Source: Macrostomum lignano
Taxonomy: Eukaryota
NCBI GenBank assembly: GCA_002269645.1
Contig: NIVC01003657.1
Location: 1-51,001, forward strand
Reading direction: 5' to 3'
Length of the DNA stretch: 51,001 nucleotides
The translations under genes and the position numbers were made by a program. A model generated the notes under the pieces. It saw only the letters and a list, made by a program, of their open reading frames with translations, ran no database searches and was not told the DNA's origin. Within the stretch, counting starts at the first letter, position 1. Every line of letters begins with the position of its first letter. Positions 2,356 through 26,300 of this stretch are shown here, one piece after another.

Positions 2356-5300
2356 GTGAGTTTGATACTACTCTAAGTAAGCAGTTTTGATTACTATATG
2401 CATCTACACTGTAAAGCTAATAGAAATGGTCCTTTTTCATTTTTTCAACAAAATTAGCGCCCATCCCAAGACTGGTCTTTCACCCACGGTGAGGGACCCG
2501 GTGGTCAAGTGCGGCAACGCTGACTACGTTATAGTGCTGAACCTGCAGCGCAAAGACTTCGACAGTTTGACAGCCTATCAGCAGCAGATGACTGCTGTTG
2601 TCGCTCGCGCCCGCCTCCTCACTGAGAACGACATCGGCGTCGGCTTTGTAGCCTTCTCCAAGAAGGTCGAGCACACGATACCGGTGACGCGCAATCTGAC
2701 GCTAGTGCAGCGCAAACTCAACCGGCTGCTGTCCCAGCTTCCGCGGTTCGACGGAATCGCCACGGGAGACGCCATGCTGGCTGCCAAGCACCTGCTCGCC
2801 AAGTACCACCACCAGCTGGTTGAGGTGGGAAGACGCAAGTGCAAGCTGCTGGCTGTGGTGGCAGTGGGTGGCGACCGAAACGCTGGCACTCACCGCACGT
2901 TCGCCGCGTCGACGCAACTGCGCCGTGTTGCCTCGCACGTATTTGCAGTCAACCTGGCGGGCGGAGCCTCTCCGTGAGTTGATTGAACTGCAGGCAGTCT
3001 CATTTTTGCTAGCGTTTGAGTGGGGAAGACTTTTGCTTCGATTTTGTCTGCTTAATCTTGATTATTTCATCCAATTCCATCCCCAATTAAATTTTGTAAC
3101 CGTCTCTCGTCTCTCTAATGCACTTCCTGCAGCAAAGAGCTCTACAGAATCGCTAGCGACGGAACGCGTGGCATCTTCGACGCGTCCAACATTGTTGAAG
3201 TCCTCACCAAGACCGAGGCCTACGCCCAGGTGTTCTGTCCGTGCCCGCTGTCCTGGACCACCTATGACAACTGCACAGTCCGGGGCCGGGCGCAGGTGCA
3301 GCGCTTCTTCTACAATCGATCGGAGGAGTTGCCGCACAATTGCATCAGAAAGTTAGCGATTTCGTTCGAGCCGTGTGGTAAGCCCTTTTTTATTGCTTTT
3401 TAACAACAGTTCAATTTTAAAGTATTCTTATGGATGATCGTGGATTGTACTACATTGTTGCGCCTTGAGCAAAGCCCACGAGATCTAGAAGACCAGCAGC
3501 AAGTCAGAGCCACTGCATGCAGCCTGCACGAGTCGTGCTTATGCATCCACACGCACATTTATGCTCGCGCTTACTCGAAGGGGTGTGAAATTATTGTAGG
3601 TTAGAATTGGCGAACTCTGTGAGACGCTGCTGATGACAGCTAAATGCACAGCACTTCTAAGTAGTGGCTGACATGCTTAAACAGACAGAATCAGGGGACT
3701 GGGAGTGGCTCTCAGGTCAAAAGTGCCAAAATATTCGCATAAGTCACCAGCTAACTCTCATCGCCAACAGATTGCCCTCCAAATCGAGTTGAGCGAAGCG
3801 AATGCGTCAACGGATTCATTCGAATCTCCACCTTTGTGTACTCCCGGCCTGACAACAACAGCGACTGTACGGAGTCCGTGACCACCCAGACTGAGGCCTG
3901 CGGCAGGGCCACCGGCTGCGAGTCCTTTGTGTGTCCGCCGGGGTCCGTGTGCGTTAACGGCACCAATAACAGTGAGTTGAGAAACGCTAAATAACTCGCG
4001 GTCTTCATACTCGTAAAATTATTTATATAACATCAAATTGGATGTGAATTGAGCACAAAATGGAGCCCGAACTTTGCGCTCTGGGTCCAACTACATCGAA
4101 ACGATTTCTTGTCGGCTTACCTGACTAGAAACACTGAGATACCAAATTCGAGTCTTCTCTATTGGGTTCTAGCATAGAATGGGATGGATTGGGTGGTGTG
4201 ACGTTCTATTTAGACTATACTGAGAAAAGTAGACGTGTACAATTTAGGTTGTAAAATCTCTCTCATACCTGGAAAGATGCCGCCTTAAAAGAAGACAGCA
4301 TAAAAGAAAGAAAAGTCTGTGCACACGGAATGCTGGGAGAGGGGCCCACTGACCAAGGCAAACAAGCCGAGGTTCAACCCCCACTTTTAGTGTGTCACAT
4401 GTGGGTTTCTTGATGTTTCTAGTTATTGATATCTCGGTGATGCTACTCGCTTCAAAGGCATTGTTTTCGATGAAACTGCGCCGTACCTCACAGTATTTCG
4501 TAGTATACATAAATTGCAACATATGTATCTCTTCAGCAGATCTGAAGTCTCGTCACAGTGACACTGAATGCGCCCTATCTCCACCAGGGGCATCACCAGC
4601 GGAAGGACATGCCCCCCCCCGATTAAAGCTATGGGGGGCATGTCTATGCTTTCGCCCCGGCACCACCTCGTGACCTGTTATGAAAATCTAGAACTTCTCT
4701 TCAGGCGCCAAAATAAGTCCCTTCATTGCCAAAAAAATCAGTACTGACGTCTAGGATTCTTGATTTTGCAACCTCCACCAAAAAACCCATGGCCAGGGGC
4801 TTGATCTCAACCACTCTACATTCACAGCCATCAGATGCAACTGCACGAATCCCAACGACATCTTCAAGACCACTGGCTGCGAGAGCTGCGGCGACCGCTC
4901 CCCGCTCACCCGCTACGGACCCTGCATTAACCGCCAGCGCACTGTCGTGGTGACCACCTTCACCAGGATCAACGACACCTACTGTCACCACGTTTTCAAC
5001 ATGCGGAAAGAGAATTGCTCAGGTAGGAAATGGGAGCTGCCTCCTGATCAGAGATCGGGGGTCAGACGATCAGAAGTTTGGGAGGTCATCCTGACAGTTG
5101 GGAGGGGAGGTCATCCTGACAGTTGGGAGGGGAGGTCATCCTGACAGTTGGGAGGGGAGGTCATCCTGACAGTTGGGAGGGGAGGTCATCCTGACAGTTG
5201 GGAGGGGAGGTCATCCTGACAGTTGGGAGGGGAGGTCATCCTGACAGTTGGGAGGGGAGGTCATCCTGACAGTTGGGAGGGGAGGTCATCCCGAGAGTTG

Positions 5301-8300
5301 GGAGGGGAGGTCATCCTGACAGTTGGGAGGGGAGGTCATCCTGACAGTTGGGAGGGGAGGTCATCCTGACAGTTGGGAGGGGAGGTCATCCTGACAGTTG
5401 GGAGGGAGGTCATCCGAGAGTTGGGAGGGGAGGTCATCCTGACAGTTGGGAGGGGAGGTCATCCTGACAGTTGGGAGGGGAGGTCATCCTGACAGTTGGG
5501 AGGGGAGGTCATCCTGACAGTTGGGAGGGGAGGTCATCCTGACAGTTGGGAGGGGAGGTCAACCCGAGAGTTTGGAGGGGAGGTTATCCTGACAGTTGGG
5601 AGGGGAGGTTATCCTGACAGTTGGGAGGGGAGGTTATCCTGACAGTTGGGAGGGGAGGTCATCCTGACAGTTGGGAGGGGAGGTCATCCTGACAGTTGGG
5701 AGGGGAGGTCATCCTGACAGTTGGGCTATAGCTTGTGATGACTTTGCGCTAACTCACAGACTTTCACTCCATGTGCTAAGCGACTTACAAAGATGAGTAT
5801 GAATAATTGAAATCAATAATTTCGAACTCGCCAGCCTGCCAAGGCAGCGGCAGCAGGCAGTTCGGGCCATGCGTCCGGGGCTATCAGCAAGTGACGGTGA
5901 CCCTCTACAGGCTGAGGGGCGGCCGGTGCTACAAGAGCCTGAAAACTTTTCAACGGCCTTGCCGACTTCAATCCGAGTACCGTGAGTGACTTTTGCAGTT
6001 TGCTTTTAAAATAAGGGATTCAGGAAGTGACTCAGTAGCATTGAATGACCGAGATTCAGGAAGTGACTCAGTAGCATTGAATGACCGAGATTCAGGAAGT
6101 GACTCAGTAGCAGAGAGTGACCGAGATTCAGGAAGTGACTCAGTAGCATTGAGTGACCGAGATTCAGGAATTGACTCAGCGGCAGAGAGTGACCGAGATT
6201 CAGGAAGTGACTCAGTGGCATTGAGTGACCGAGATTCAGGAAGTGACTCAGTGGCAGAGAGTGACCGAGATTCAGGAAGGGACTCAGTAGCATTGAGTGA
6301 CCGAGATTCAGGAAGTGACTCAGTAGCATTGAGTGACCGAGATTCAGGAATTGACTCAGCGGCAGAGAGTGACCGAGATTCAGGAAGGGACTCAGTAGCA
6401 TTGAGTGACCGAGATTCAGGAAGTGACTCAGTAGCAGAGAGTGACCGAGATTCAGGAAGTGACTCAGTAGCATTGAGTGACCGAGATTCAGGAATTGACT
6501 CAGCGGCAGAGAGTGACCGAGATTCAGGAAGTGACTCAGTGGCAGAGAGTGACCGAGATTCAGGAAGGGACTCAGTAGCATTGAGTGACCGAGATTCAGG
6601 AAGTGACTCAGTGGCAGAGAGTGACCGAGATTCAGGAAGGGACTCAGTAGCATTGAGTGACCGAGATTCAGGAAGTGACTCAGTAGCATTGAGTGACCGA
6701 GATTCAGGAAGTGACTCAGTAGCATTGAGTGACCGAGATTCAGGAAGTGACTCAGTAGCAGAGAGTGACCGAGATTCAGGAAGTGACTCAGTGTTAGAGA
6801 GTGACCGAGAGTTGGAGTCAGAGTCAGGTGCGCCATGCAAGCCGCATCCGTGACCCGCCCTGAGCAGAGTGCATCGGCAGCGCTCTGAGCGGCGGCCAGT
6901 TTCTCACCTACGACGGCCAGCTGATTGACTTTCCGGGGCCCTGCGAGTATCTGCTGAGCGAGAGGCAAGGCCACTTCCAGGTGCGAGTCCGGCACGCCAT
7001 CAAATTCCCCAGCCTGCCGCAGCTCACCCAGCTTGACGCCATCGTCATCGTGATGGGCAACAGGAGCTACGAGCTCGCGAACAACCTCGTCTTTAAGGTT
7101 GGTTGGCTTCCTGAAACAGACTAGTTATCACTATAGCGAGTTCGATAGACAGCTTTCTTTAATACTAATCCTATTCGAATCCTCTCTTCCCCAGCCGCAC
7201 CCCCTTTGAGGTCCCGCATCCCCACCCTGATAACCATTCAGACCCCACTTCCCCACCCTAATCCGCATTCAGGCCCCACTTCCCCAACTTGATCCCCATT
7301 CAGATCCCACTTCCCCACCCTAATCCGCTTTCAGATCCACTTCCTCACCCTGATCCCCATTCCGATCCCACTTCCCCACCCTAATCCGCATTCAGGCCCC
7401 ACTTCCCCAACTTGATCCCCATTCAGATCCCACTTCCCCACCCTAATCCGCTTTCAGATCCACTTCCTCACCCTGATCCCCATTCCGATCCCACTTCCCC
7501 ACCCTGATCCCCATTCAGACTCCCCATCCAAAACTTGATCCCCTCTTAGAGCTTCATTCCTCAAACCATATCCATATACTAAAATTCACTTTCTAATCTC
7601 GATTCCCATGCCATTTTCAGACCCTCGAAGTCCCAATTCGACACTCCTAATCTCCAGCCAATCTTACCGAACTTACCGAAATCTTGCCGTGATCCCTTCC
7701 CCCGAGTAAATCAAAGCACTGATTCGCATTCACTACAATCTCAAGAGATCCCCCGATCCCGTTGCCGCAGGTGGGCGCCGTGGCGCAGCCGCTGCCCTAC
7801 TCGGACGCGGCCAGCGGAATCGAAGCGATCTACAGCGACGACGCGCTGGTGTTTGCGGCCGGCGACCTGTACGTGCAGATGCGCGGCTCGGCCGCCACCA
7901 TCAATGTGCGCTCCGGGGCCGGCGGCCTTCGCGGCATCCTGGGCAACTGCAACGGCAGCCCGGGTGATGACTTCACGAATAGCAGCGGCCAGGACGTGTC
8001 GCAGCAGTCAAATCCTAGCGCGGCTCTTGGGAACAGCTTCCGAGTGAGACCTGCTTGGGCTGGGGTCGGTGGGAGAGGGGAGAGGGGGGAGAGGTGGGTC
8101 TTGGTCGCGCGATGTCCTGAGCCTGAGAGTGGTTAAGAGTGTGCGCTGGCTGATAATGAAACAGTATCGTATCAGAATCATAAGCTTTCGGTCTAAACGT
8201 CACTATGTTTGCATTTTATTTTTATGAGCTTTGAATAAACTGTGAATTCCGTTGGCTTCAATTTCTTTCTAACTTTCTCTCTCCAGTTGACGACCTGCTC

Positions 8301-11300
8301 AACAGCAGACTGCTGCTCGCTGCCGGACACAGCGCCAGCTTGCGGCACCAACGCCAGCATGGAGGCGGCTTCCGTGTCCAACTGCGGCCACCTGACGGCG
8401 GACGCCATGTCGCCCTTTGCTCACTGCGGCCAGACAGCCATGCAGCCGCTGTTCAGGGCCTGCATCTCGCTCTACTGCCGAGCCAAAGGTAATAGGCAAC
8501 ATTTTATTGATGTTTGTCTTAAGTATGAAAGTAGATTTTGTAGGAATCCGAGTTTGATAAGTTCGAACTGCGCTCGTAGTTTTTACTTTTCAAGGTATAT
8601 TTAGAATTAAAAATACTTGAGGGCGCTTGGTTACCAGGCAATAAGGCGATATCACCAATCTTGATTAATTTCGCAGCTAACACAATGTGGCAACGCTCGC
8701 TTGTGTGCAGCACCCTCGAGGCTGCAGCCTTCCGTTGCTACTTGCAGCAGCAGAACGGCACCCAACGGAGCCGTTATCCGATATTCCGGTCGTCTAACTT
8801 CTGTCGTAAGCATCTTTTAGGACCAATACTCACATTTTTTTCATCCCAATTTTCAAGATCCCTGAAAGAAATCCGAATCTTTCGCAGCAAAATCCTGCGG
8901 TCACAATGCTGAATTCGTTGACGATGCTGACTTTTGCCCGAGGACCTGCGCGCGTCACTTCTTTAACAGCCAGTCGCTGGGCTGCGTGACGCCATTCGGC
9001 TTCAGATCAAGGAACGTGAACGGCCAGTCGCCGCTGCCAGGCTGCCAGTGCAAGCCGGGCTTCGTGCTGGATGGAAGCAACTGCGTGCTACCCAATGAGT
9101 GCGAGTGCATCTCCAACCTGTGCATCGACCGGCAAAACCGGACAGTCTGCGAGGCGTGGAAGGCGCAGGGCTACTGCGACAAGTACCCGCTGCAGATGCG
9201 TCGCTACTGCAAGCTCACCTGCGACCAGTGCCAGGCGCCGTGCCAGGACCAGATCAGCAAGACGACATGCCAAACGATCAAGTCGCAGGGCAGGTGCAGC
9301 GACAGCTTCTACAAGCAGATGTGCCAGCTGACTTGCAATCCGAGTGACTGCGGTAGGTTTCAAAACCAGGTTTAATCTTAATCACAGATCATAGAATCAG
9401 CTAGATTTTTTACTTGCAAAAGCAGAGCGTATCCTTTTTTCAGTAGTCTGTCTGTGCAGTGTCACTTAAATTTGAAGCTAAAATTACATTTCCTTCCTCG
9501 GGGTTTGCCGCTGCATGAGCAGGTGGGTAAAGAATGAGCAAGCAAGCGATGTACACAGGTGAACGCAAGACGGACGAAACTCAGCCTAGGGGCAGGCCCA
9601 ATCTGGCTTAGCCAATGAGAGAGCAGTAAGGAGAGAGGTCAAAGTCAGACACAAGCCAAACTGTTTATGGGCCTGGCTGGAGGCTGGGGCGCCACCCCTT
9701 TTCTCTCTTGCTCGCCATGCACACGTCCGCCGAGCACGATTTGTGTTTTTACGTTTTCCTGTAATTTTTGGATTTGAGCTCATTCCTTTTTATTAAATAA
9801 TTTAGAGCCGGAGGCAGTCTGGAGTCGTTACAGTAGAATGAGGATGCTGATATCTGCAGGCAGAAATTGTTTTCTTTCTGGGTCTGCTTGTAGAGACCCA
9901 GAGGCGATTGCTGCAGCTTCAAAAAAGTTTTAATAACTTCTAAAATTTAATAGATAGGAACTTAAATGTGAATATCTGGAATTCCACAATTCCAGAATGT
10001 CCGCCCTGCAAAACCGTCCGCGGCCCATGCGACTCGCAGAACAAAAACCGCCGGGTCGTCACGTACTGCTACGCTCGCTGCCAGCGCAGCAGTCCAGCAG
10101 CGTCTACGAACCCTGCGGCGACTGCCAGGAACAGCAGCAGCGGGTGGACACTCGTCCTGCAACTACTGCACTCAGCGAGCAGGTGACCAGGATTGTGCGG
10201 ACAGTTCGCGAGACCCGAGATGCGGCGACTGCCAGGAACAGCAGCAGCGGGTGGACACTCGTCCTGCAACTACTGCACTCAGGAGCAGGTGACCAGGATT
10301 GTGCCAGTTCGCGAGACCACAGGCGAGATGCGCTGCATTGAGGTGAACTCAAACATGACCACCAGGAGTCCCGGCTGCGAGTGCCAAACGAACACCAACA
10401 GGACTGTGTGCTACCGCAACTCTGAACTATACGTCATCAACACCGTATCAGCACCCTCCGCTGACTGCGCCACCTGCAACACCACAGTCACGGAGACCCG
10501 ACTGCGCAACGTCACCTGCACAAAGGTTGTTAAGCGCGGTGAGTGCGACCAAGTTGTCACCAAGCGACGGCCAGTGACAGTGACGCGCGGAATTGTGCGC
10601 AACTGCCAATGCGACCTGATCACGGAGCAGTATGAGGAAATGTGCGTCTGCCCGAAGCCGCACTGGACGCCAACAATTTGCCATCGCAACCGCGCAAAAC
10701 TGCGCTGGTTTGTAGCTTTCAGTCTCGTTCATGGCCGCTGCGTGCCGATTGTGAAGCCGCACAAGCACCGCGTGCCGTGTCCAAGGCGGCATCACGTCAA
10801 GTACAAATGCAAGAGCTGCAATCGATATAAGTTGCATTCCTGGTACGAGCGGCGTCATTGCCGTTGTATTCGAAAAAAGAAGACAGTTGAAGCTGGACGA
10901 TGCTGTGAGCCTTTTAGAATTCTTACTGCTACTCTCGTACTTACCTGCACTGTAATAAAACACTATGGCTTATTGTATCTTACTTTGGTTTAAATCTTTC
11001 TATTTTGCAGGCTGCCCTAAACCGAAGAAGGTACGCGGCGAGTGCATAGGCCAGCATAGGCGCATTTTAATCACCCATTACACGCTGGACAACTACGAAT
11101 GCCAGGAAGACACTCGAGAGATTTCTGAGCGCTGCGGCTGTCCGCCATCAAGGCCGATTAAAGAGTGCGACGGTGAGACTGGCATGATAACCGTAGGCAA
11201 ACTGGTCTTCAAGCTGGTCGATGGAACCTGCGAAGAGGTTCGACAAGTAAAGACAGAGCCTACAGGTGAGTGCAGTCTATCGTATCGTTTCGGGTTTTCT

Positions 11301-14300
11301 TTTCTAATGTAAATATGAGACGGCACTTTGGTTTCAGGGACATTCTAGATCAATAGTTTAAATTGACGAAAGTTGTTTTGAATGCAGCTTTGGATTAACA
11401 TAGGACCATTCTTTCATTACTAGCTTTCGAGCAGCAAATCAATAATCATCATCTCCATTACCTGAACTTAGTTTGCAAGAAGATGCGAGTGATTCGCCGA
11501 GGTCCGTGCCGCCTGTTGAAGGAGGACGACGTCGTCAAGTACCGGCGCGTGTACTACGAGCTGTGGAAGCGAATTCGTGGAGATTGCAAGTGTAAACACA
11601 TTAAGCGGTCAAAGCTGGTCGCCTGTGGCTGCCGCGAGCCTCAAGTGCGCGTGTCAAAGTGCCCGTCTGGCTGTCCCACCACCAGCCGCAGCTGTCCCGA
11701 ACATTGCTATCGGACACGAGCGGTGGTTGAATACCACCTGGAAGATGGCAAATGCCATCCCGAGGAGAGAGACCAGCAGGATCTGCCCTGCTGCTGCGAG
11801 AAGCCGCGTAATAAGCCGCCAGTTTGCGAGAACGGGAAAATTTTGGCTATTCGAAAATATCACGTCCAGCTAGTGGCCAACGTGAGTTAGCACAAAATCG
11901 GCTTCTTTTCGTTTTATATAGTACAGATAGTGGCTATATAAGTTAGAAAACACCAGGAAGATTAGCAGCGTAGCCTTTCAGTGATCGCAAAGGCGCCCTG
12001 TATTTCCTAATTAAAAACAGGCCTGCAAAATCAAGAAGCACGTCGTTCGCAAAGACGTTACTCGACACTGCGATCTCACTGACGTGCGCCGAATGCGTCA
12101 CGGAGACGTTATCATAGTGAAGCGGCGCGTTGTGCGCAACTGCCGCTGCATTTGGCGCGAGAGGCGAACCAGCTGCCCGGCTCGGTGCCCTCCGCCCTCC
12201 AAATTTGTCAGGTGCGACGGAGCCACAGGCGAACGGGTGCTCATCAAGCGATTTTACAAGATGCATTCCTGCCACTGCCTACCAGTGAAGCGAATTCGCC
12301 GACTGCCAGTTGACTGTCCGGAGCCGCGCATTGAGCGCCGGAATTTTTGCTTTAGAGAGAATCCAGCTGTCATAATAAGGCGCATTAACTTCTATGTGGA
12401 CGGCGAATGCCACTGCAAAAGAAGGTCTCTGAGAAGAGATACCGGTGTGAAGGAGAGGGTAAGTTGCTTCGAATGCTATTCGGGAAATGTCGCTTCAGCA
12501 GTAAAGAACTCTCGCTATAGAGTATGGCAGCTTTTTAACTCTGCTTTTCGGAAGAGCTCTACTTATGTTACTTACAGGACAAAAAACAAACAATATTTTA
12601 TACAAAAGATTTTAGCGGTTTTATCTGTCTTAAACTTCAGAGTCAATCTTAGCTAACTTCCAAGGCCTTTTTAATGTTTTTAAACATGGCATCTTTTAGT
12701 GTGTGATCAACGCCCGTCCGTTAGACTCCACTGCCACGCCAACCGCTTGTACAATGTCGTGACTCTATTCAAGCGAGACGAGGAGGGCCGCTGCGCACCC
12801 CATGAGTTCAAACACAGAGTTGAGACCCCGCCCTGCACAGGTCACGGCAAGAGGAAGAAGGTTAAGAAATGTGTCAACGGAAAGCTGATCCTGCTTATTA
12901 ACTGGCTTGAAAGGCGACACTGCAAATGCCACACAAGATACAGGAAGAGCGTTATCGGATCCTGCAATAGCTGTAAGTAGAGAAATTGGGAACTGTAAAG
13001 TGTGAAAAAGCAAAATATTATATTAGGGTGCTTTATGATACTCTGGCATCATGATACTTTTGTTGTAAGTTTCGGTGTTGGATTTTGGAAATTTCAATTT
13101 TCACTCAGTCGATATTTTGATAGTTTTAACCAGCTCTCTCTATTCTTTAATTGCAACAGACTGCGAGCACAGAAACCGCGGTAAGAGCCTTCGGACCCGA
13201 CGCCGCTGCAATAAGCACACAAACGAACTAGTTGTCTACCGCCTGAAGTGGAACTTTGACGGCGATCACTGCGTGCGCAGATGGGTCGCCACTAACAAGC
13301 GGGTGGAACCAGACTGTCCAGGACCTCGGCTTCGACGACTGCCCTGCGACCACGAAACTGGCAAGCAGCGCCTAGAGAAATTGGTGTATCATATGCGCAA
13401 CTGCAAATGCCGCGGTCCAAAGCTCAAGGTGTCTTACAGGAAGTGCACTTGCCGCGGTCCCAAGGTGCTCGGCCGGTACTGCGACCATCGGCATGGCTGC
13501 ATTGTTGTTCGAATGCTGATTCATAAATGGAACTTCGAGATGGATGCGTGTCACACTAGACTCGTACGAAAATCGATTCCAGTTCGTAAGTGCAGCTTGA
13601 TGCGAGTTTTATTGATTTTATAGTTGTTTATAAATGCTTGATTTCTCAATTTTGAAATATTTATATACTAAATGTTCCTAAATCTGCTACTCTTTAGCAT
13701 GCAAACATCACATCCATTCGAGCCACGGCGCCTGCATCCACGGTCATATGCAGTATCGTCGCACTCGTTATGTCCGCGACCGGCACAACTGCCGCTGTCG
13801 AAAAAAGATCGAAAAGAAACTAGTCAACTGCCGTGAGTTTAAAAACTACAAAGCATGTTTTCACTTTGTAAATCATGTTATTAGAGGCCTAAAACCATAA
13901 AAAACGAATAACTCTTCAGACTGCCCCGTTGTTATTCGTCGGAAAAAGTGCAACGATAGACGGAGTGTTGCAGTTACAAGAATTGTTTACCGAAAGTTCA
14001 GTACAAAGAAGCGCCGCTGTGTTACTGTTAAGGTGAAGCGCCACCACCGAAAGTGTCGCTGCCCAAAGCCCAAGGAGGTGAAGAAGTGCGTCAACGGAAA
14101 GAGGCTTGTTAAAAGATTCAGTTATCGATTGGTGGAGGGCGAATGCGAGAGAGACAAATCCTCGGAAACGTTCAGCATAGGTCAATATTTTTATTTTGAA
14201 CTTCTGTCCTCATCTAAACAAAATAATAACAATTTTAACATAAATACTTCTAGTTTGCCGCAAGCCGCCGGTCGTTCGATCCACTAAATGCGACGAGAAC

Positions 14301-17300
14301 ACGTGCTTTCGAAAAATTCTTACTTATAAATGGAAAGTGAATCCGAAAAATTGTCGCTGCCAACTTCAATTAGTGCATCAGAAGACGTGCCGATGCTGCG
14401 GTAGGTTTAGAACTTTTTCTGTTTGCCACTTATCGTATTCACGTATGCTTTAAAACTCAATATTTGTCCAACTATCCACAGGATGCCCAAAGCACAAGCT
14501 TAGCCGGACTTGCATCAAAGGGAAGATCTGGAAATTTACAGTCGTTATTCACTCTCTGCGGATAAAGAAATGCTCGAAAACTTGTCGCAGACATGTGACG
14601 CATCGCACCGAGCGAGTTCGCTGTCCGCAAAAGAAACGCGTGCACTGGTCTCGCTGCCACCGGTGCCGTAGTAGGAAGATGGTGACGAAATTCCGCAGCA
14701 TTGGCTGCCGATGCCGCCGCCGATTATACAAAACTGACCACTTTAGGTCCTGCTGCTGTCACGGAGGGACCCGCGTGAAAAAGCTCTGCCAGCAGTCTAC
14801 TGGTCGTTGGGTTAGACATATTAGTAAGAAAAAGTTGTCAGGGCACAAGTGCGTGCGGCACACTAAAGTCAAATACCTGCCACGACCAGGTACAGTTAAG
14901 AGTTCTTTTATTTGTTAATAAAAGTTCGCAAGTAGATTTATAGTGAAATAATTTTGATTTAAATTTTCAGTTTGTCGTCTGCCTGAAACGCCTGTTACAT
15001 ACGGAGTTTGCAACAGGACCACGTGCCAGCAAACAGTAACAAAAGTCGTTAATGTTTTGAACAAGCACACCTGCAGTTGTCACATGGTTAGCAAGCCAGC
15101 AGGAACCAGAACCTGCTGCTGCTTGAATACAACGCCTGAAATAAAGATTAACTGTGTCAACAACAACATGAAGCAACGCGTTACAGTGGCTCCCGTGTTC
15201 GATGAAGCCACACATACGTGCACCACTAAAACCGAAATCGCTACTGAATTGGTGACTTGCGGAGATGGGGAAACTCGCTCTTCAGATCCGCCGTGCACTG
15301 GAGAGACCCGAACAATTGTTAGGACAAGATCTGTTGTTGTTAACTGCGTCTGCGTTAACCAGACTGTTGACACCAGAACAGAGATGTGCACTTGCCCATC
15401 CCCAACTAAATGGACAGTTCGCTGTGATGTCAACAGCGGAAAGCAAGTGCTTACAAGAACCGTTTATAATTTAGTAAACGGTTCTTGCTCTGCAGTCACT
15501 GAAACAAAGCTCCGTACTGTGTTCTGCAACCAGAAACCACAGGTTGTACCTGTGTGCAACAGAGACAGCTGTATTGAGACCGTGACAACAACAGTGACAC
15601 GACTTGATATGTCTACTTGTACTTGCGTTCCGGACAGAACGATATCTACAAGACAGTGCTGCTGCCCAACTACGACGCAGACACGAAACGAATGCATCGA
15701 CAATCAAATAAATACCATAACTACCAGGCAGACGCTTAATGCGGTAACTCGGACGTGCGAGTCATCCGACACCACCACCAGATCGGGAGAGGTGCCTTGT
15801 AAAAATGAGACCCGAGTTAATGGGCCCTGCGATCGGGCAACTAGGAAACGCAAAATTAAGGTTACTAGGCGAGAAATAATAAACTGCCAATGTCAAACCA
15901 CTGGCGTTTCAGTTGTTCGTGAGCTATGTGGTAAGCGGTGCGAAATTTATCGATATCGTCTGTGATGCACTTCAAAATTGTTTGAATAAATTTTGCCACC
16001 ACTTTACCGTTTCAGCTTGTCCACCAACGCGGAAGAATCAAGGGCAATGCGATCGCAAAACTTGCATGCGCCAAGTGACATTGGTTAAGTTTAATGCGGT
16101 AACATCGAATAATGGCACTCTGCACTGCGTCAAGACTATAAGTCACCGCCAGCAGCGCTGTTGTTGCACTCCATTGGGTCATAAGCGAGTTCGCGTGCAT
16201 GTGCAGTGTGACAGAGAAACAGGAAATATCTTGATAAATAAAGAATGGAGCAAGTTTGTTGCTTCTACAAAACAATGCCGAACTTTGCACAAGTCTTGGA
16301 TCAAAGAAGTTGGTGAGTAGGACTTTTAGAAATACTTTTAGCTATTATTTTTCTGTAGTTTTCTTATTTATTATACGAGCTTTTCTCGGACATTCTACCC
16401 GACTTTTTATTTCCAGATTGTACCAGAAAGTTTGATGGAGAAGGCCACCTAGAACACCGAGGTCGGTGCAATCATCGAACAGGACGAAGGAAGATAATAA
16501 TGAAGTGGTATACGCACGACACACGCAAGTGCCGATGTAAACTTCACGTCCGAAAGCACTACAGAATCTGCTCATGCAAGCACAAGCGTGGTATGAAGCA
16601 TAAATACTGCGACAAGGAAACAAATGAGCTGGTGTCTGTGCGGAAATTCTTTGTTCTTGAAGACGATCAGTGCATTCCTCAGGAATCTCAGAAAAGAAAG
16701 CAAATTGTTTGCGCGACAAATAGACAGGTTAAAGAGTCCTGCAACAATTGTGACAACGTAAAAGTAATCAGTTATTATGTGCTGTCTAACTGTAAGTGTC
16801 GGAAAAAAGAAATAGTTGAAAAGACGAAGTGTTGCTGTCCAGAAGAGAAGTTTTACCGGAAGTGCCATCTTGGTAAAATTAAAATCACTACCGTTAAGTT
16901 TCGTCTGAGCGAGGACAAAAGAAGTTGCGAACGCATCGAAAATCACAAATACAGGCGTGTCCGTGAGTGATGACAGATTTTTCGATCTAATTTAAATTCA
17001 TATACTTCATCTCTATTGTGGCACCAGTTAATTGACGTCCATTACAATTGGACTCCATCCATTTTGCAGGATGTTCCCGAAAGCACAAACTGAAGCGTGG
17101 AAAGTGCAACCATGAAACTTGTTGGGCGAAAGACAAGCTCTTTAAATTCTATGCACGAAAATGTCATTGCCACAAGCAAGTTCACGTCAAAAAACGACGC
17201 TGCTGCTGTCCAAAACCAAAGCTGCGCACCCGTTGCCGAGGTCGAGGCATCCTTATACACGAAAAAACAGTATATCACTTGCACGATGGTCATTGCGAAC

Positions 17301-20300
17301 CTCAGTTAAGCCGAAAGAGAGTCCGAGTTCACTGTCCGGAGCCCAAACATCTGGGGAAGTCACATTGTAGTAGAAGAACTGGTCGGCGTTCTATACAGTT
17401 TAAGGTATTTAAACTGCACAAATGTCGATGCGTGCCGAAGCTGCAGCGTCGGTTTGAAATATGCGCGTGTCCGAGGCCACGTGTCGTACGCCAGCATTGC
17501 AAAGATGGACGTCATCATAGAGCAGTATTCAAGATCTATTTTCACCGCTATGAAGGCAGTTGCAAAGCAAAGAAAAGGTTCATTTACAAGGAGCCGTGTC
17601 GTAAGTACAATTTTATGTTTTTACTTTCACATTCATTGCAAATTTAACAATTTACATTACTTTGAACCGTTGCTATTGTCTACAATTCGATTTATAGACT
17701 GTCCCCAGCCCAGTCACAAAACGTTCTGTGATTCAATGGATGGCCATACTCTAGTTAAACAGACTGAGAGCTTCCAGATGACGATGCGCCACGGTAGAAG
17801 AGAGTGCATACATTCGCATCACGAGAAACCGCACAGAGTCCATTGTCATAAGCGTTCTGTACATCGTGGAGGGTGTTATGATGGTCAGCGAAAGATTTCT
17901 ATCACTGAGTACAAAGTACGGCACTGCAGGTGCATTAAAAAACAGCACGTTCGATACATTCGATGTAGACGAAGACTTCATCATAGGCGGCAACGCCGGT
18001 GTCATGATGGACGCATAATTAAAATTGCCTCCGTCTACGATCCTGATTCAGGTGAAATGCGTGAGCAGCGTCACGTGAAGCGCGTTCTTTGCAGAGAGCG
18101 GCCTAGAGTTGTTCCCCTGTCTCGAGGCTGCAAACTTCGAGAGGAGGATGGAGGCTTTTATAGAAAAGTTGCCGTCATCAAGAGTGTCCTTTCTGGCTGC
18201 CACTGTAAGCAAAAGCGCCGAATATCTTGGAGACTATGCCGTTGCCATGGAAGCAAAACGCTACATCGTTGTATACATGATTTTATTGAACACCAGTACA
18301 CCGAAAAGCACCATCGTCACAATGGCCACTGTAGACGGAGGAGAGAGAGGCGAACCCGAGAGCATCGGTGTTCGAAGCGTCCAGTTGCAATCAGAAAGAG
18401 CCGTTGTGATCATCACAGCTGTAAACGCCGAGTTTTCCTGCGCCGTTGCTATTTGAAGCATTGTAGTTGTCGATGCAAGCAACGGGTTGGGTACGAAAAT
18501 TGTTGCACGCCTCCACCCGTTAAAAAACGATACTGCAAAGATGGTCGTTGGCACTACATAAAAACCCGTTTCCGAATGCACAAGGACCGGTTGATTGGCA
18601 AGGACTCGGACAGTGGAGACGAGTGGAGAAAAATGGAAGTTAACCCTCACACAAAGCGCTGGTCAAAACGTGTTGATTGTCCAGAGCCAGAGATTCGCCA
18701 GACATGCAATCGTGATACAGGAGTTCTTACAAAGCGCATAACTGTTTATCGCAACATTCATTGCAAATGCCGGCCTCGTATGCGCACCGTTCATTCCCGC
18801 TGCCAATGCCCACCTCCGAAAACCCGCGCTGGTCACTGCGTTCGCGGACGTCGCCGCCTAAGACACACCAACTACCGATTGGGCAAGAATGGACACTGTC
18901 ACAGGCACCATACAGTGAGCTGGAAGCCTTGCGGCTGCCCAAAGCCCAGGAAAAAATATCGTTGCCACCGTGGACAAATTCAGATTTGTACGACCGTCTT
19001 CAGAAAGCACAGAGCTTGTCGTCCCAAGCGCCAATGTCGGTCCAAGAAGGTCCACTGTCCACCCCCGAAAACAAAGCGTGGAAATTGTTCGCAAAAAACA
19101 AAAAAGTTCAAGATATCTCATATACGATACACTGTCAATCAAAAGACCTGCAAATGTGACCGACATGTTGTTGCACGTTTTGCCTTCTGCAGTAAGTTAG
19201 AAACAGTTTCTGAATTTTCTTATAGAAGTAATTACTGTACTAGACCTAACTTGAAAAATGACAGACATAAATGTTCTGCCCAATTAAATATAATGATTCG
19301 AACCTTTCGGTTTCAGCCTGTCATCACCTAAAGCGGAAACAGAAAAAGTGCCATGGAAATGTTTGGGTAACAGTCAAAATTAACTACCGTCTAAATCAGG
19401 GCGAATGCGTACCCGACGAATCAGTTAGCCACAAAGCCGTCAAATGTCGGCGCCAGCTTACAGAGCTAGTTCCTGGATCATGCGAGCGGCGGAAAGGCTT
19501 GTCATCAAGCGGTACACAAATTGCTCGAACGCTGACTTCTGTGCCTGTCAAATGCCATTGCAAGAATCGAGTCCGCACTCATCGGGTTCCATGCATTTGT
19601 CACTTGATTAAAAAGTACAAAACACAAAAAACAACGGTGTGTCACTCTGACAGATGGCTGGTTACAAAAGTGCTGCAGTACCGCTTGGTCAAAGGAAAAT
19701 GCAAGCCACGTAAGCATAAGAAGTCAAAGACTATTCGATGTCATGGCAGGAAAATAAAGCAAACAGCTTGCTTCAAAGACGATCTAGGCGACAGCTTTCA
19801 ATATGAGTTGACGTTGCACAAAAGGCCTCGCCACTGTCGCTGTCACTGGAAAATTGTCAGAAAGGTTCGCAAGAACTGCGGCTGTCGGCCACCAACATCA
19901 AGTCGGAGCTGCGTGAGTGACAACATGTGGGAGCAAACCGTGATAAAATACACCAAGCCGGATGTCCCAAGTGCCAACTGTGAGCCCCGCACTTCGATTT
20001 CAACACGGATGGTTAACTGCACCACGCCTCGTACGAAAATTCTTTCTTGTAACACTCATACTTGCTATGCTAAGGAAGTAACAATTCGATACAAACCCAA
20101 GTTGTGCCAGTAAGTACCAATAAATACCCGAAATAACTATTACTTTGATTAAAAACCTAATAATCTCTTCTTTTGGTTGTGAAAAGTCTAAAATAGTACT
20201 TTTTTCCCATTTTTTGCAGTTGTCATCCTGTGCGCTCGTATCGAAGTCTCCGTTGCTGCTGCCCGGCACCAGTAGTTAGTCCTGAACGATGCAATGCAAC

Positions 20301-23300
20301 TAGCAACCAGTTTGAGCAAGTCACATCGCGATACACCTTGATTAATAACACTTGTGTGTTGCAGCAGAATACAACTGTTAGAACAGTGACTTGTGACACA
20401 CGATCTGGAGAGACGAACACCTCCGTGTGCAACACAACGAGCAACAGACAAGTGGTTACTATTCGCGACGTTTCTATTGTCAACTGCCAGTGTGTCACAA
20501 CCACCAGAAGCCTCACACAACCATGCTCATGTCCTTTAAATGAAAGAGTGGAGAAAGGTCTGTGCAATGGAACTCAGAACTATACAACTGACAAGTACTA
20601 CAGGCAACAATACAACTCTACAACCAGACAGTGTCTTGAGGTTCTGTTCAACTCTGTCCAGCGCCCATGCCTATGCAATGCGGTGTCAGTGAGAATAACC
20701 TGTATAGGAAATACACTGCGGCGTGTAACACACAGCGAAGAGCTAGTAAACAATACATGTGTCAAAAGAGCATATATCACGGATAGGGAGATAACTTGCG
20801 CAGGAAATGGAACATCCACACAGACTAGAGATGGCTGTAATTCGGTGACGAGAACTCGGTAAATTAATTTTTTATTTATTAGCATAGTATATATATTTAA
20901 TACTAGTACCTTAAACTTCATGCCAAATACAACTCAACAACTTAGTTTCTTTCGATAAAACTTCTAGTACAATCACGAGAATAAACTACGTTGTCGAGAA
21001 CTGCACTTGTGTGGCACGTTCAACTCGTTCAAGCGAGATTTGCAACTGCTTCGAACTACACGGAGGAAGACACGACGAAAGCACGTGCCGAGCAGACAAT
21101 GTGACAATTCGTCATATAAGCTACTACTATGATGGTCCCGGGGGCGTCTGTTTGCAACGTAACTTTACTACTGAACAAAGAATAAAATGCAAAGGTAAGA
21201 AAGAGGTTCCTCAGGGCTGCAATCGAGATTCGCGCAAAGAGGAGATTAGGATATACCACCTGGTACCAATCGCCTGCAAATGCGAGTGGTCCGAGCAGCC
21301 TCCGCGCTACGAAGACTGCAAGTGCAAAAAATCGTACAGCAAAAAGATCTGTCACCACGACAAGCAAATAATCGTTACAACTTACTATAAACTGGTGAAT
21401 GGGAAATGTCAAAAGCGAAAATACAAGAGGGTCGTGCCAATTGATTGCGACAAGAAAGGTCGGAAGACTGGTATACATTATGGACGGTGCAGCGAGTTTA
21501 GCGGCACCCGTCGCGTTGTCAAGTACGTGACCCGCGTGCACGGCTGTCACTGTGTAACAAAGCGTATCCGCCAAAGATGTCCATGCCGCTGCCCAAATAG
21601 CCGCACTTGGAGTGCCTGCAAGGATAATAAGGTCGTTACTTTCCGGCTCACTTACCAGCTGCGGGGCTGCCGCTGTGTCAAGAATTTAAAGAACTATGAA
21701 AGTCGGACCGTTTGTAAAAAACGTCGGGTTGCGAGAACTGCCTGCATCAAAGGCCTAGATGGAGATGGACATCTTACAGTAAGAATTCCATATAATAACG
21801 CATGACTTTCGAGGAGTTAACCTGGAGTTTATCTTGGGTTACTCAAGTACATGATAGTATTTTAATTTCAGTTGTTTTAAACTAGTTTAAAAGTACACTT
21901 TGAACAGTACACTTGTATGAAAGCGTGTAGCAACGTTTTATTAAGTTAACTTATGAATTTACATAAATTGTTTCTAAACTGAAGATTTGTGCATCATTTT
22001 CAAAAAAATTCAAGGTCGTGCACAGTCGTGAGCAAAGCGTCAATTGTCGCTGTCAGCTTGAAAAACACGAGCATCAGGAGGCGTGCCTGTGCCAAGCCAG
22101 AGAGAGCAAGAACAGAGAGTGCCAGGGAAAGAAGCTGAGCATCGTCACCACTCGACGTCTGTTGATCCAAGGCACATGCCAGCGAGTGGTGGTCAAACTG
22201 GAAACTCAGGCAGTTACATGCCCTTTGCAGTCGGTCCGTCCTGTTTCTGCCTGCAATAAGCACGGCTATCGTCTGCTTGAAAGGACGACCTGGAAGGCTG
22301 AAGATTGCCATTGCAAACCGCACGTGCGACTCGAAAAGCAGCGTTGCAACAGAAGTAAGCTAGAAGTGAAGAATGAGCCCTTTATAATTTTTTGCTGGTC
22401 TAGCGAGCCATGTCGAATATACAAGCCATGTTTACCCCCCCCCCGGTCAACATTTTTTTAGAGTGCGACAAAGGTCCCAAGGTAGTCCGGGAATCAAAAT
22501 GTGACAAGGAGACGTGCACTAAGCGTCTGTATTATTACTATAAGAACCAGAAGTGCCACAGTCGCCATTTTGCCATAACTGCCAAGTGCTGTTGTCCTCC
22601 TTCGCATCACGGCAAACAAAAGTGCGTTGGAAAAGCATTCGAAGTACGTAACTTGTTCTACAAACTGCAGCATGGTGTTTGCGTCATGTCGGCAGTGAAG
22701 TATAGACAGGAAATCGGTGTGTATCGCCCAAACTTAACTTGCTATTTTTTACTTATCATATGAGCATATACACTAAACTTGAGACTTATTTACCTTCAGA
22801 CTGTCGAAGGCAAGAAATATTTGAAACAGCCACTTCTGCCAGTGGAGATACGATAATCCTAAAGACTTGGCATGCCGTAAAGGACTGTAAATGTCAAAAG
22901 TACAAGAAAAAATTGCTCTCGAAACACCGAGGTAAGAAATCAAAATGACTGAATTTAAAATGTTTCAATATTTTAAGGCAATCTCATTTCTACCTAACAG
23001 AATGTCGACAACCTGAAGTAAAGCATGAATGCGTGAGTGTCCCAGAGCAGCGGCTAGTGCAAACTGTTACACGATTCACCAAGCATTCGAAGCACGGTGA
23101 GTGCCAGAAATGTGAAGAGGTCATTGAAAAGCCGATCAATTGTCCTTTGAACATCGTGCATCGAGGTCCATGCCGGAAAGACTCGTCACGTAAAGCTTTC
23201 GTTCGAGTTGTACGGCGCATCTCCTTCCGAAAGGTGGATTGTCGTTGCGAGCCTAAAAAGTCAACACATCATGAGGTGTGCCGCTGTTTCCAGCCCAGAT

Positions 23301-26300
23301 TTTCAACTCGCTGCCAGGGCAGCAAGGGCAGGATTCTGATCACGAAGCATCATTTTGAAGTCAGTCCAAGCGGATCCAAATGTTATGGGCGCAAAGAAAC
23401 TGATTCGATACAGGTGAATTGCGACTCGACATGGAGAGCTTCTCATAGGGGTCATTTTAGGGATATTAAATTTCACCACAGGCTGGAATGGCATGAAAAT
23501 GGTGAGCAAACAGAAGACAACATGCTGTCTCGAAGACGCAGGGATATCTCTGAAACACAGATCGAAGGACAAGATGAGGGCTCAGATAGCGGATGGGACG
23601 GTTCCTTTTCTAAATTCCTGGAGAGAGAAGTTCGGGTTGGCTGCAGCTGCCGTGTGCAGCGTCGGAAGCGGCACTGCCACTCGCGCTGTCCAAAGTCAAA
23701 GAAGTACTTAAAATGTGAGAACGGTCAAACTCTCTGCAGGGTAGAAACAACTTATCAGCGAAATGGGCGCTGTCGCTGTTCGTATCGTGTTCGCAAAAAT
23801 CCTGTAAAAGTTCACCTGCCTAAGCCCAAGGTTGTTCATCATGGCTGCCAAAAGTGTCAGGAGCGCATCGAGACGATCTATTATCGAAATGTCAATTGCA
23901 AAGCTAAGCGGTTCTGGCGCTGGCACAGCCGCCGGTGCTGCTGCAATAAAAAGCCTGTGGTCAGAGTGCACTGCAAGGCTGGCCAGATGCTAGTGTCCCA
24001 GAGACGAACCGAACGGCTAGACAAAGATGGCCACTGTGTACCGCAGTACGAAAACAAGTACAAGCTGATCAGCTGCAAAAGAATCATCAGAGAGAAGCCT
24101 CTGACAGCGTGCGCTGATGGTCATCGGGTTTGGAGGCGCGAGCTAGAAAAAACTGTTAATTGTGCATGCAAGCGCGGGTCTGAAAAGATCAGGCGACGGT
24201 GCGGATTCAAAGGTAATTGTGGTTCTAGATCGGGTTTTTTCAAAATTAATCTATTGATTATCCAGATAAAACTAACCCTAAACATATCAATTTTTTATAG
24301 CCTGCCACCCAACGGTCATCAAGCATGGCAGGTGCGTAAACTGTGCGAGCAAAGTGACAAAAACGGAGTTTATATTCAACTCAGCAACGCAAAAGTGCGA
24401 GGCAAAGAGGTTCCATCACAAGAAAAAATGCTGCTGCCCATCGCCTCGCTCAACAAAGAAGTGCATTGGAAACCGTCTGCTCCTGGTTACTATATCATAC
24501 AAATATCAGATTAGCTCTGGAAAGTGTGAAAAGTGCAAAAAGTCAACCGACATCACACATAGCATCTATAAGCGTAAGTCAAAAGCATCGTGCTCATGAC
24601 TTTTTATATAATAAAGACTAAGTTGCCAGCTACCTTTGAAATTAATTTTTGTTTTAATATTAAAGTTTAGCTACCGAAAACTTCAACAATGCTACTTCTT
24701 TTTGAGAGCTTTTTGAAAACAATAAAATCTGACTTTTTAGGCTGCCAGCGGTCGAAAAAGACAAAGATTGGAAGCTGCATGGAAAATGGCTTCCGTGTTA
24801 TTGTGACGATTAACCCAACTCTGGTGGACTGCGAGTGTCACAAGAAGCAGTCACTCAAGTTCGAGAGATGCCAATGTGAACTTCCTTCAGTGTCCGAGTC
24901 CTGTGTGCGCAACGGCACTCTCAAGTACCGAAGGGTTATCAAGCAAGAACTGGATGGCACCGTATGCAAGAAAATCAAGGAAGAGACTTATTCTGAGGTT
25001 GAATGCCCCGTCAGTACAACCAGTGAAGGAGTCTGCGACAGCGTCAGCTGCCAAAGAATCATAACGGACGTGTCTTATTCTGTTGAGAACTGTACGTGTC
25101 AAAGACTGACAACCCAGCGTGTGGAGACCTGCTGTAAGTTATGCTTTTTGGCTATTTTGTCATAACGACTACTGAAGTATTGTAGATATATACTAAGTTT
25201 TACGTTCTTATGGGTTAGAGTGGTACAGATAAAATCATCTTTTTGAGAAAAATCGCCAGTGGTTTAAAGTAGTGGTAAAATGAATATTTTAAACATTATT
25301 TCAGGTTGCCCGCCAACAATAAATGAAACGAGGACATGTGAACGAGCTGAAAACGTTTTGACGATCACGCGGCAGTATCAGGAATTCGACTTGAGAAATC
25401 GTGCTTGCGTCATCCGAACTAAAACTGACCGTGTCGGCACGATCTGCCCTCAGAACTACCGCTCTTTTGCCTCTCCATGCGATCAGTTTAGGAACAATAG
25501 CTTCTACAGAACTGTGAGCGAGTCCACCACAGTTGCATCCGGGTGCGAGTGCGTGCCACAGACCACCACCCGCACGGAACTCTGCGGCTGTGATTCAGCT
25601 CGGGATTACACCGTGTGCACACCTGAGAACCAGATTCTCACCTACCGAATCGAGTACAAACCCAATGAAAACAACACAATCTGCGAGCCAAATCGCGTCG
25701 TTCTCAACGTACGGGACGTCCAGTGTGACAGAACTCGTCGCTCAAATACTCCAAACTGCACCACAGGCACTCGCAGCGAGACAACTGGGGAGACGCGCAT
25801 AACCGTCGTCACAACTTGGCAGCGAGCCGGCAGAAACTGCACTTGCGCCACGCAGACGCGCTCGGAAGAGATTCTGTGTGCCTGTCCAGAAAACTCCGAG
25901 CCGAAAACTGTCTGTGATCATAAACGCCATGAAAAGTTGAATGTCACAAAAGTGTATCGGCTGCTAGTCACTGGAAGCATTCGCCAGTGCATCCCCTCCA
26001 AGGTTGTCACTCGTTTGGGTCGCATTAAATGCCAGGCACCCGTGGTGCAGCTTGGTCATTGTCAGTTTGGCCTAATGACAGTCAAAACTATTGTCCATCT
26101 CATCCACGGCTGTCACTGCGTGCCAAAGCACTTCAAGCACCAGCAGCGCTGCCAGAAACATCTGGAGCCCTGCATTAACAAATTGCCTGACTGGCTCTGT
26201 GCTGACCTCGACCGCAAGCATGATATCTGTACGCGCAACTTCACAGGCGCTGAGTCTGACCCAGAGTTGAAACAGTTGGCTGAGGCTAGCGCCCTCTGTA

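Follow-up and report, generated by a model that had tools for sequence, protein, structure and literature searches.

What does the long cysteine-rich array in contig NIVC01003657.1 of the flatworm Macrostomum lignano encode, and what kind of module is it made of? The window, i.e., the whole stretch of DNA that was analyzed, comprises positions 1 to 51,001 of the forward strand of this contig (51,001 nucleotides; GenBank assembly GCA_002269645.1). A first-pass annotation, made from the letters alone, had singled out positions 9996-26150, where it saw two types of Cys-rich module (A and B), estimated at 90-100 copies in all, and had proposed that they form a disulfide-stapled rod, possibly descended from thrombospondin type 1 repeats (TSRs). 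Our own reading, to which we assign a probability of roughly 0.6, is that the array is part of a giant secreted flatworm protein in which ~95 copies of an undescribed, disulfide-clamped module of ~44 residues form an extracellular filament, located between VWD, TIL, and ShK domains on one side and ShK and PAN domains on the other. Such a filament would serve as a structural element, either in the extracellular matrix or in secretions, a view that we hold with good confidence for its structural part and with low confidence for the biological role.

A Cys-rich array spread over 26 exons

As for the gene, the list of open reading frames (ORFs) contains a series of reading-frame segments on the + strand that chain from ~3.7 kb to 28 kb, each with 7-16% Cys. 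These ORFs are exons, and a bacterial-style ORF reading of the region was rejected. The hand-built model has 26 exons (9996-26666) separated by 25 GT-AG introns of 69-255 bp, the splice sites being GT-AG pairs picked so that the Cys pattern runs on. Its spliced product is stop-free over 4484 amino acids and contains 427 Cys. The GenBank entry PAA50356.1 from M. lignano ("hypothetical protein BOX15_Mlig008915g3," 3733 amino acids) is a 5'-truncated model of the same gene, and all the junctions of the hand-built model from 14889 to the stop at 28079 are identical in it. This entry starts at an internal Met that we estimate to lie near 14680, which leaves the N-terminal domains and ~4.7 kb of the array outside that model. 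Upstream of 14889, the junctions agree with those of PAA91016.1 (hereafter P0108), a ~97%-identical paralogue corresponding to copy Mlig008915g5. Several near-identical copies of the gene (g3, g4, and g5) are present. Twenty of the 25 introns are in phase 1 and placed one codon ahead of the first Cys of a module. Phase-1 introns at module starts are the usual signature of duplicated extracellular modules.

The array itself occupies 9996..26182 on the + strand, across the 26 exons. When the spliced product was searched with a hidden Markov model (HMM) of the A+B unit, seeded with three units and iterated on that product, residues 2-4323 were found to be tiled by 43 full units of ~91 residues and ~9 partial units (halves), which amounts to ~95 modules. 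In control searches, the unit HMM found no full unit in any of three shuffled versions of the protein and three weak ones in the reversed protein. The first-pass annotation had thus placed a genuine two-variant Cys-rich repeat on the correct strand and at the correct position, and its count was about right. At the level of single modules, an HMM finds 83 in single reading-frame segments within 9996-26250, a figure in which modules split by introns are uncounted, and ~7 further modules beyond the range first annotated, at 3773-5965 and 27472-27867. Units share a mean pairwise identity of 20%, which is 12.5% outside the Cys columns; as had been noticed at the outset, the spacing of the Cys is kept while the other residues diverge. 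Within the array, Tandem Repeats Finder detects no repeat at the DNA level. Because of this and of the low identity between units, we conclude that the array is old and diverged, and not the product of a recent expansion.

In Macrostomum, the array is strongly cationic. It has a net charge of +618 and an isoelectric point of 9.9, and some of its exons consist of 37-42% Lys, Arg, and His, 42% being the maximum for any exon. Other exons are rich in Thr, Ser, and Asn, which make up 31-33% of the residues in 14971-15930 and 20220-20858. Of the 33 N-x-S/T sequons in the whole array, ~20 fall in Thr/Ser/Asn-rich exons. We also observed that composition switches sharply, in blocks of exons, with 14971-15930, 20220-20858, and 25305-26182 on one side and 13698-14889 and 17070-19191 on the other.

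Cys framework, predicted fold, and relatives of the module

The family consensus, k..v..g.C...tc....nCkC....CcCp....C....y.l..g.C....v.C, accommodates both of the patterns that had been written for A and B, except that a single residue turns out to serve both as the closing Cys of B and as the opening Cys of A. An A+B unit has eight Cys, or ten when an optional pair is present. Seen module by module, the framework is Ca-(P)-x8-10-Cb-x~20-(C-x)-Cc-x10-13-Cd, with a Gly ahead of Cb and a G-x-C turn. When compared with hhalign, the A and B profiles align with a probability of 91% (E 9e-7), and they share a single four-Cys frame. The two forms are indeed interleaved with a fixed Cys framework, as first described, but these profiles suggest that a single ~44-residue, four-Cys module with two variants describes them better than two separate module types do. 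Variant A is the form found after a one-Cys junction, while variant B is the form found after a two-Cys junction.

The Cys code of the module can be read from 492 near-complete units of 92 proteins, in which the same Cys columns recur. In eight of these columns, the Cys is conserved to 80-100%, and a further two columns are optional. The optional Cys, at column 14 (the "TC" Cys) and column 44 (the middle one of "CCC"), tend to be present together (odds ratio 244, p 6e-93), as would be expected if a disulfide joined them directly. A second regularity concerns the turn Cys (column 30), which is the first of the "C.C" doublet. It is present in 416 of the 441 cases in which the upstream junction has one Cys and absent from 84 of the 103 in which that junction has two (odds ratio 74, p 1e-56). 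This exchange shows the junction Cys and the turn Cys to be alternatives.

The structural models give a consistent all-β fold. For a single B-type module of 44 residues, AlphaFold2 returned a predicted local distance difference test (pLDDT) score of 96.1, with three antiparallel strands at residues 5-12, 15-25, and 31-41. For two units, i.e., four modules (181 residues), the model is all-β with 12 strands, a pLDDT of 93.3, and a predicted template modeling (pTM) score of 0.62, the pLDDT staying at ~89 or higher across the module junctions. In these confident predictions, each module folds as a β-meander whose three strands, 8-12 residues long, run up-down-up. In the predicted topology, the optional Cys pair, one member of which is near the start of strand 2 and the other just past the end of strand 3, is found on the same side, which provides independent support for the predicted fold. 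The long hairpins of these models fit the stapled rod that had been envisaged.

The predicted topology also suggests how the Cys might be paired. Of the four Cys that define the module, Ca (usually within C-P) opens it, Cb marks where strand 1 finishes, Cc where strand 3 begins, and Cd closes the module. The meander would then have Ca and Cc at one of its ends and Cb and Cd at the opposite one, which makes Ca-Cc and Cb-Cd the likely clamps. At a B-to-A junction, Cd is missing, and the hairpin turn of A has one more Cys (hence the "C.C" doublet). Cb of B would there bond with this turn Cys in the following module rather than with the tail of its own, and neighboring modules would be covalently linked. 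The optional Cys pair ("TC" and the middle of "CCC") would form a fifth disulfide. In unit columns, the pairs predicted are 89'-32, 9-43, 45-76, 55 with 30 of the unit that follows, and optionally 14-44.

Relatives of the module were found by a profile search of 1.84 billion representative proteins, which returned 101 at E≤1e-3. For 28 of these the match reached E≤1e-30, and a single protein had as many as 54 matched stretches. Word-indexed homology searches, with a 310-residue exon and with an alignment of 22 units, returned no relatives because a word index cannot seed on repeats that have diverged so far. The restriction to flatworms rests on the 30 named matches that were looked up, from the top and the middle of the ranking, all of which are from Platyhelminthes, namely Macrostomum (several paralogue families), Echinococcus, Sparganum, Echinostoma, Paragonimus, Dicrocoelium, Calicophoron, Trichobilharzia, and the monogenean Cichlidogyrus. 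In Echinococcus granulosus, for example, EUB62272.1 has 5275 amino acids, 54 matched stretches, and the annotation "Collagen alpha-3(VI) chain." The repeat spans 53-90% of these proteins, whose other domains are VWA, VWD, ShK, and, in one fragment named by its source, CTCK. On this evidence, the module is an undescribed and apparently flatworm-restricted member of the small disulfide-rich extracellular repeats.

Further members were seen on short environmental or read-archive contigs, P0010 and P0025 in JGI/IMG metagenomes and P0004, P0011, and P0012 in Logan assemblies. One of them is an ORF of 2157 amino acids that fills a 6.7-kb contig. These sequences are probably transcripts of unsampled flatworms.

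Gene layout, the proposed filament, and other readings

On either side of the array, the + strand encodes a series of extracellular domains. Homology with copy g5 places a signal peptide first, then a region named VWFA by UniProt and a few modules, and then VWD. Three isolated copies of the module are encoded in upstream exons, at 3773-3901, 4887-5018, and 5834-5965 (module HMM, independent E-values of 1e-9, 2e-6, and 7e-11, respectively). The exons at 3773..5965 match residues 274-456 of P0108, with minisatellites in the introns between them. The VWD-encoding exons are found at 6867..8046, where residues 457-625 of P0108 map at 91-98% identity; in this 97%-identical paralogue, Pfam places VWD (PF00094, E 9.5e-13) at residues 464-607. 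Between VWD and TIL, the Cys-rich exons at 8269..8810 match residues 619-736 of P0108; they are C8-like by eye and have no Pfam match at E≤0.01. Directly 5' of the array, 8869..9352 encodes a TIL-like domain followed by two ShK-like domains, the second of which was recognized by eye. In the corresponding exon (8866-9372), ShK (PF01549) is called at E 2.2e-6 and 28.5 bits, compared with a gathering cut-off of 20.9 bits, and TIL at E 6.3e-5 and 23.5 bits, slightly below its cut-off of 24.5 bits.

On the 3' side, the last exon with array modules goes on to encode a ShK-like motif and a PAN/apple domain at 26183..26666 (PAN_1, PF00024, E 1.4e-5, 25.3 bits, compared with a gathering cut-off of 21.4 bits). 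The C-terminal exons, at 26750..28082, encode a ShK-like motif, three B-type modules (27472-27867; module HMM, independent E-values of 3e-7, 2e-6, and 2e-4), and a terminal ShK-like motif, after which comes the stop, PAA50356.1 ending in ...STCNRC at 28079. All the ShK-like motifs other than the first one of exon 8866-9372 were identified by eye only. Some paralogues have VWA_4 and VWD, and one fragment in a paralogue cluster is named as CTCK-containing by its source. Such a layout is that of a secreted and probably multimerizing protein of the matrix or mucus type.

Several other repeats and one other gene are found in the window. Large intronic minisatellites occupy parts of the N-terminal portion of the gene, at 5080-5725 (25 bp, 26 copies), 6017-6810 (36 bp, 22 copies), and 7186-7543 (31 bp, ~11 copies), and account for the long ORFs seen near 6 kb on either strand, which are spurious. 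Just 3' of the stop of the gene, two 18-bp minisatellites at 28619-29111 and 29222-29631 (27 and 23 copies, with 99-100% matches) read as Cys-rich "ORFs" yet are simple repeats. An ORF at 31316-31750 encodes a WSC domain (Pfam PF01822, E 1e-17) and apparently belongs to a separate downstream gene. At 43241-43661, an 11-bp tandem repeat of 38 copies, which is unrelated to the array, lies under overlapping ORFs on both strands.

In the reading that we favor, the chain would advance by about one strand length per module, and ~95 modules would very roughly make a semirigid filament of 0.3-0.4 micrometer. It would be cationic over most of its length in this species, with glycosylatable Thr/Asn-rich stretches interspersed. 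Assembly via the N-terminal VWD would probably multimerize the protein, as in von Willebrand factor (VWF) and gel-forming mucins, and the multimer would act as a structural or adhesive extracellular fiber that binds polyanionic glycans.

A number of points weigh against this reading. First, the alignments given to AlphaFold2 drew on the paralogous repeats of a single protein, with 22 other unit pairs for the two-unit model and 56 rows for the single module, and, because the pTM is only 0.62-0.64, the geometry between modules, and hence the stiffness of the rod, is less certain than the fold of the module. The disulfide map rests on topology and Cys co-variation, and the length of the rod is likewise something that we infer. 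Second, Lys, Arg, and His make up 17-21% of the parasite orthologues, compared with 26-29% in Macrostomum, and the extreme basicity is not conserved. Because the parasite orthologues lack the strong charge, polyanion binding may be specific to Macrostomum, and it is the Cys frame rather than the charge that is conserved. Third, Pfam makes no VWA call in P0108 at E≤0.01, and the gene ends in modules and a ShK-like motif, without a CTCK domain. Fourth, no expression, localization, phenotype, or functional data were found in the literature and its supplements for Mlig008915 and the Echinococcus orthologue.

A last point against it concerns this copy of the gene. The first array module(s) contain, on the + strand, a 107-bp tandem duplication at 10114..10327 (exact k-mers at a 107-bp offset), which, together with single-base shifts at 10090-10330, breaks the frame of the first module(s) relative to copy g5 (residues 890-990 of P0108). 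The disruption was defined in the context of 9996-10340, and the modeled "intron" at 10063-10296 simply bridges it. Because the 5' end of the array is frame-disrupted, the full-length protein may not come from this locus; the disruption may also account for the internal Met at which the GenBank entry begins. It could stem from a faulty assembly, or it could be a true lesion carried by one of the copies in the neopolyploid genome of M. lignano. Read as a lesion, and taken together with the late start of the GenBank model and the several near-identical copies, it favors a decaying duplicate, i.e., a pseudogene in which the repeat is a relic while functional copies reside elsewhere. We regard this as unlikely since more than 4300 codons are open downstream and all the splice sites are intact, which is unexpected of a decaying copy, and since no more than ~250 bp of sequence, GC-rich and repeated, is affected by the lesions. 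Indel errors are plausible there, in an assembly that we take to be long-read. Either way, the identity of the module is unaffected.

With a similarly low probability, the modules could be VWC, fibronectin type I-like (FN1), TIL, or TIL E modules that have diverged so extremely as to be beyond recognition by sequence or by Foldseek. Their host proteins carry VWD, TIL, VWA, and, in the one paralogue cluster with a source-named fragment, CTCK. Fibronectin type I modules have ~45 residues and four Cys, and short all-β modules score poorly in Foldseek. However, no Pfam family matched 10 exon translations at E≤1, and none was shared among 22 single units at E≤10, which agrees with the first impression that this is no standard Pfam domain. 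A profile search of PDB sequences returned no match at E≤10. In Foldseek searches of the PDB with the four-module and single-module models, the best E-values were 0.15 and 0.31, respectively, and corresponded to generic three-stranded meander pieces of unrelated proteins, with no TSR, CTCK, FN1, or VWC structure among the best 50 matches of either model (the best 50 of 677 for the single module). A single three-stranded meander, as predicted here, is also unlike the two-sheet layout of FN1 and VWC modules. The cystine-knot growth-factor fold of CTCK, with its CxGxC...CxC knot and two fingers, is likewise opposed by the absence of a Pfam match and by the simple meander that is predicted.

Descent from TSRs, more precisely from their strands B and C after loss of the strand that carries the WxxW motif, had been proposed by the first-pass annotation, and we find it improbable. 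There are similarities, since TSRs and, by prediction, the present modules are elongated, disulfide-stapled extracellular modules of roughly 45-60 residues with antiparallel strands, and the predicted up-down-up order of the three strands is, in gross terms, that of TSR structures such as 1LSL. Yet, in the 4323 residues of the array, in which Trp represents 0.9%, there is not a single W..W or CS.TCG motif, nor is there any Pfam match to TSP_1. When compared by hhalign with an alignment of eight solved TSRs (thrombospondin-1 and properdin chains), the module and the unit gave probabilities of 0.2% and 0.1%, respectively, while the A-versus-B positive control gave 91%. Furthermore, all three strands of the module are regular, none being "lost," and the framework has four Cys per module instead of the six of TSRs. 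A very remote kinship with TSRs is conceivable for so small a module but unlikely.

Least probable is that the array is a polyprotein precursor cut into small cationic Cys-rich peptides, e.g., antimicrobial ones, as the small, disulfide-rich, and often very basic modules (with dibasic sites that are abundant simply by composition) might suggest, since the module borders have neither spacers nor a conserved cleavage motif (junctions being V.C or C.CP), neutral Thr-rich glycosylatable blocks are interspersed, the orthologues are far less basic, the pLDDT stays high across junctions, and the odd number of Cys in each A and each B, together with the junction/turn Cys exchange, implies disulfides across module borders.

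If the filament reading is true, flatworms own a building block for giant extracellular filaments, a compact β-meander module with a simple, readable disulfide code that is used 20-50 or more times per protein. The mutual exclusion of junction and turn Cys would show how, in nature, a disulfide that normally closes one module can be diverted to connect it with the next. A broader proposal, which we advance tentatively and at slightly less than even odds, is that this is a new extracellular fold family that arose in, or was retained only by, Platyhelminthes. It would build covalently cross-stapled β-meander filaments hundreds of nanometers long, a phylum-specific matrix polymer conserved in free-living Macrostomum as well as in tapeworms, flukes, and monogeneans and therefore lacking in the vertebrate hosts of the parasites. 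Since no counterpart was detected outside flatworms, such a matrix component would merit study as a structural component, an antigen, or a marker. Pfam has no entry for the family, whose members bear only labels such as "hypothetical," "VWFA domain-containing," or "Collagen alpha-3(VI)," the last of which is misleading. Modeling the family would correct the annotation of dozens of proteins of several thousand residues in parasites of medical and veterinary importance (Echinococcus, Paragonimus, Dicrocoelium, and schistosomatids). The significance of the finding lies in a new domain family and in this correction, rather than in a new principle.

Comparison with known systems

Like the TSR (PF00090), the flatworm module is small, occurs in long tandem arrays, and is predicted to be elongated, extracellular, and disulfide-stapled, with antiparallel strands. 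It differs in having neither the Trp ladder nor CSxTCG, and it matches TSRs neither in sequence nor in profile, nor in fold among the best 50 Foldseek matches. SCO-spondin combines long TSR arrays with VWD-C8-TIL assemblies, and the flatworm gene shares with it, and with VWF and gel-forming mucins, the presence of VWD and a probable TIL domain upstream of a very long central region. This architecture suggests secretion and disulfide-mediated multimerization, which are predicted here. In contrast to these proteins, the center of the flatworm protein is a new Cys module rather than a Pro/Thr/Ser-rich (PTS) mucin region, VWC repeats, or TSRs, and the gene ends in ShK/PAN/ShK rather than in CTCK. 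As for fibronectin type I modules and the FN1-like subdomain of VWC, they resemble the flatworm module in length, number of Cys, all-β structure, and assembly into tandem rods, but they are two-sheet modules, whereas a single three-stranded meander with no Pfam match is predicted here.

Two giant adhesion proteins of M. lignano itself, Mlig-ap1 and Mlig-ap2, are Cys-rich and secreted and have VWD and TIL domains, features that the protein encoded by this locus probably shares. Mlig-ap1 combines a C-type lectin domain and 17 EGF modules with Lys/Arg-rich KR-regions (>3,600 amino acids, for which a pI above 14 is stated), while Mlig-ap2 has repeats of 221/255 amino acids and TSRs (PMC6410801). 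The extreme richness in Lys and Arg and a proposed role as polyanion binder (PMC6410801) are further likenesses between Mlig-ap1 and the present protein. We considered whether the gene could be Mlig-ap1 or Mlig-ap2 and rejected it, the published layouts (PMC6410801) being unlike the TIL/ShK-array-ShK/PAN layout found here. The paper reports no homologues in NCBI nr (PMC6410801). The A/B module family, unlike them, reaches the parasitic flatworms. To our knowledge, these worms lack duo-gland adhesive organs.

Finally, the fibrillin-type rods of cbEGF and TB modules offer a parallel in overall design, since they too are long extracellular filaments in which small, disulfide-locked modules follow one another by the dozen, with phase-1 introns where one module meets the next. 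The flatworm module is unrelated to theirs and has no calcium-binding consensus, and adjacent modules are predicted to be joined by covalent links.

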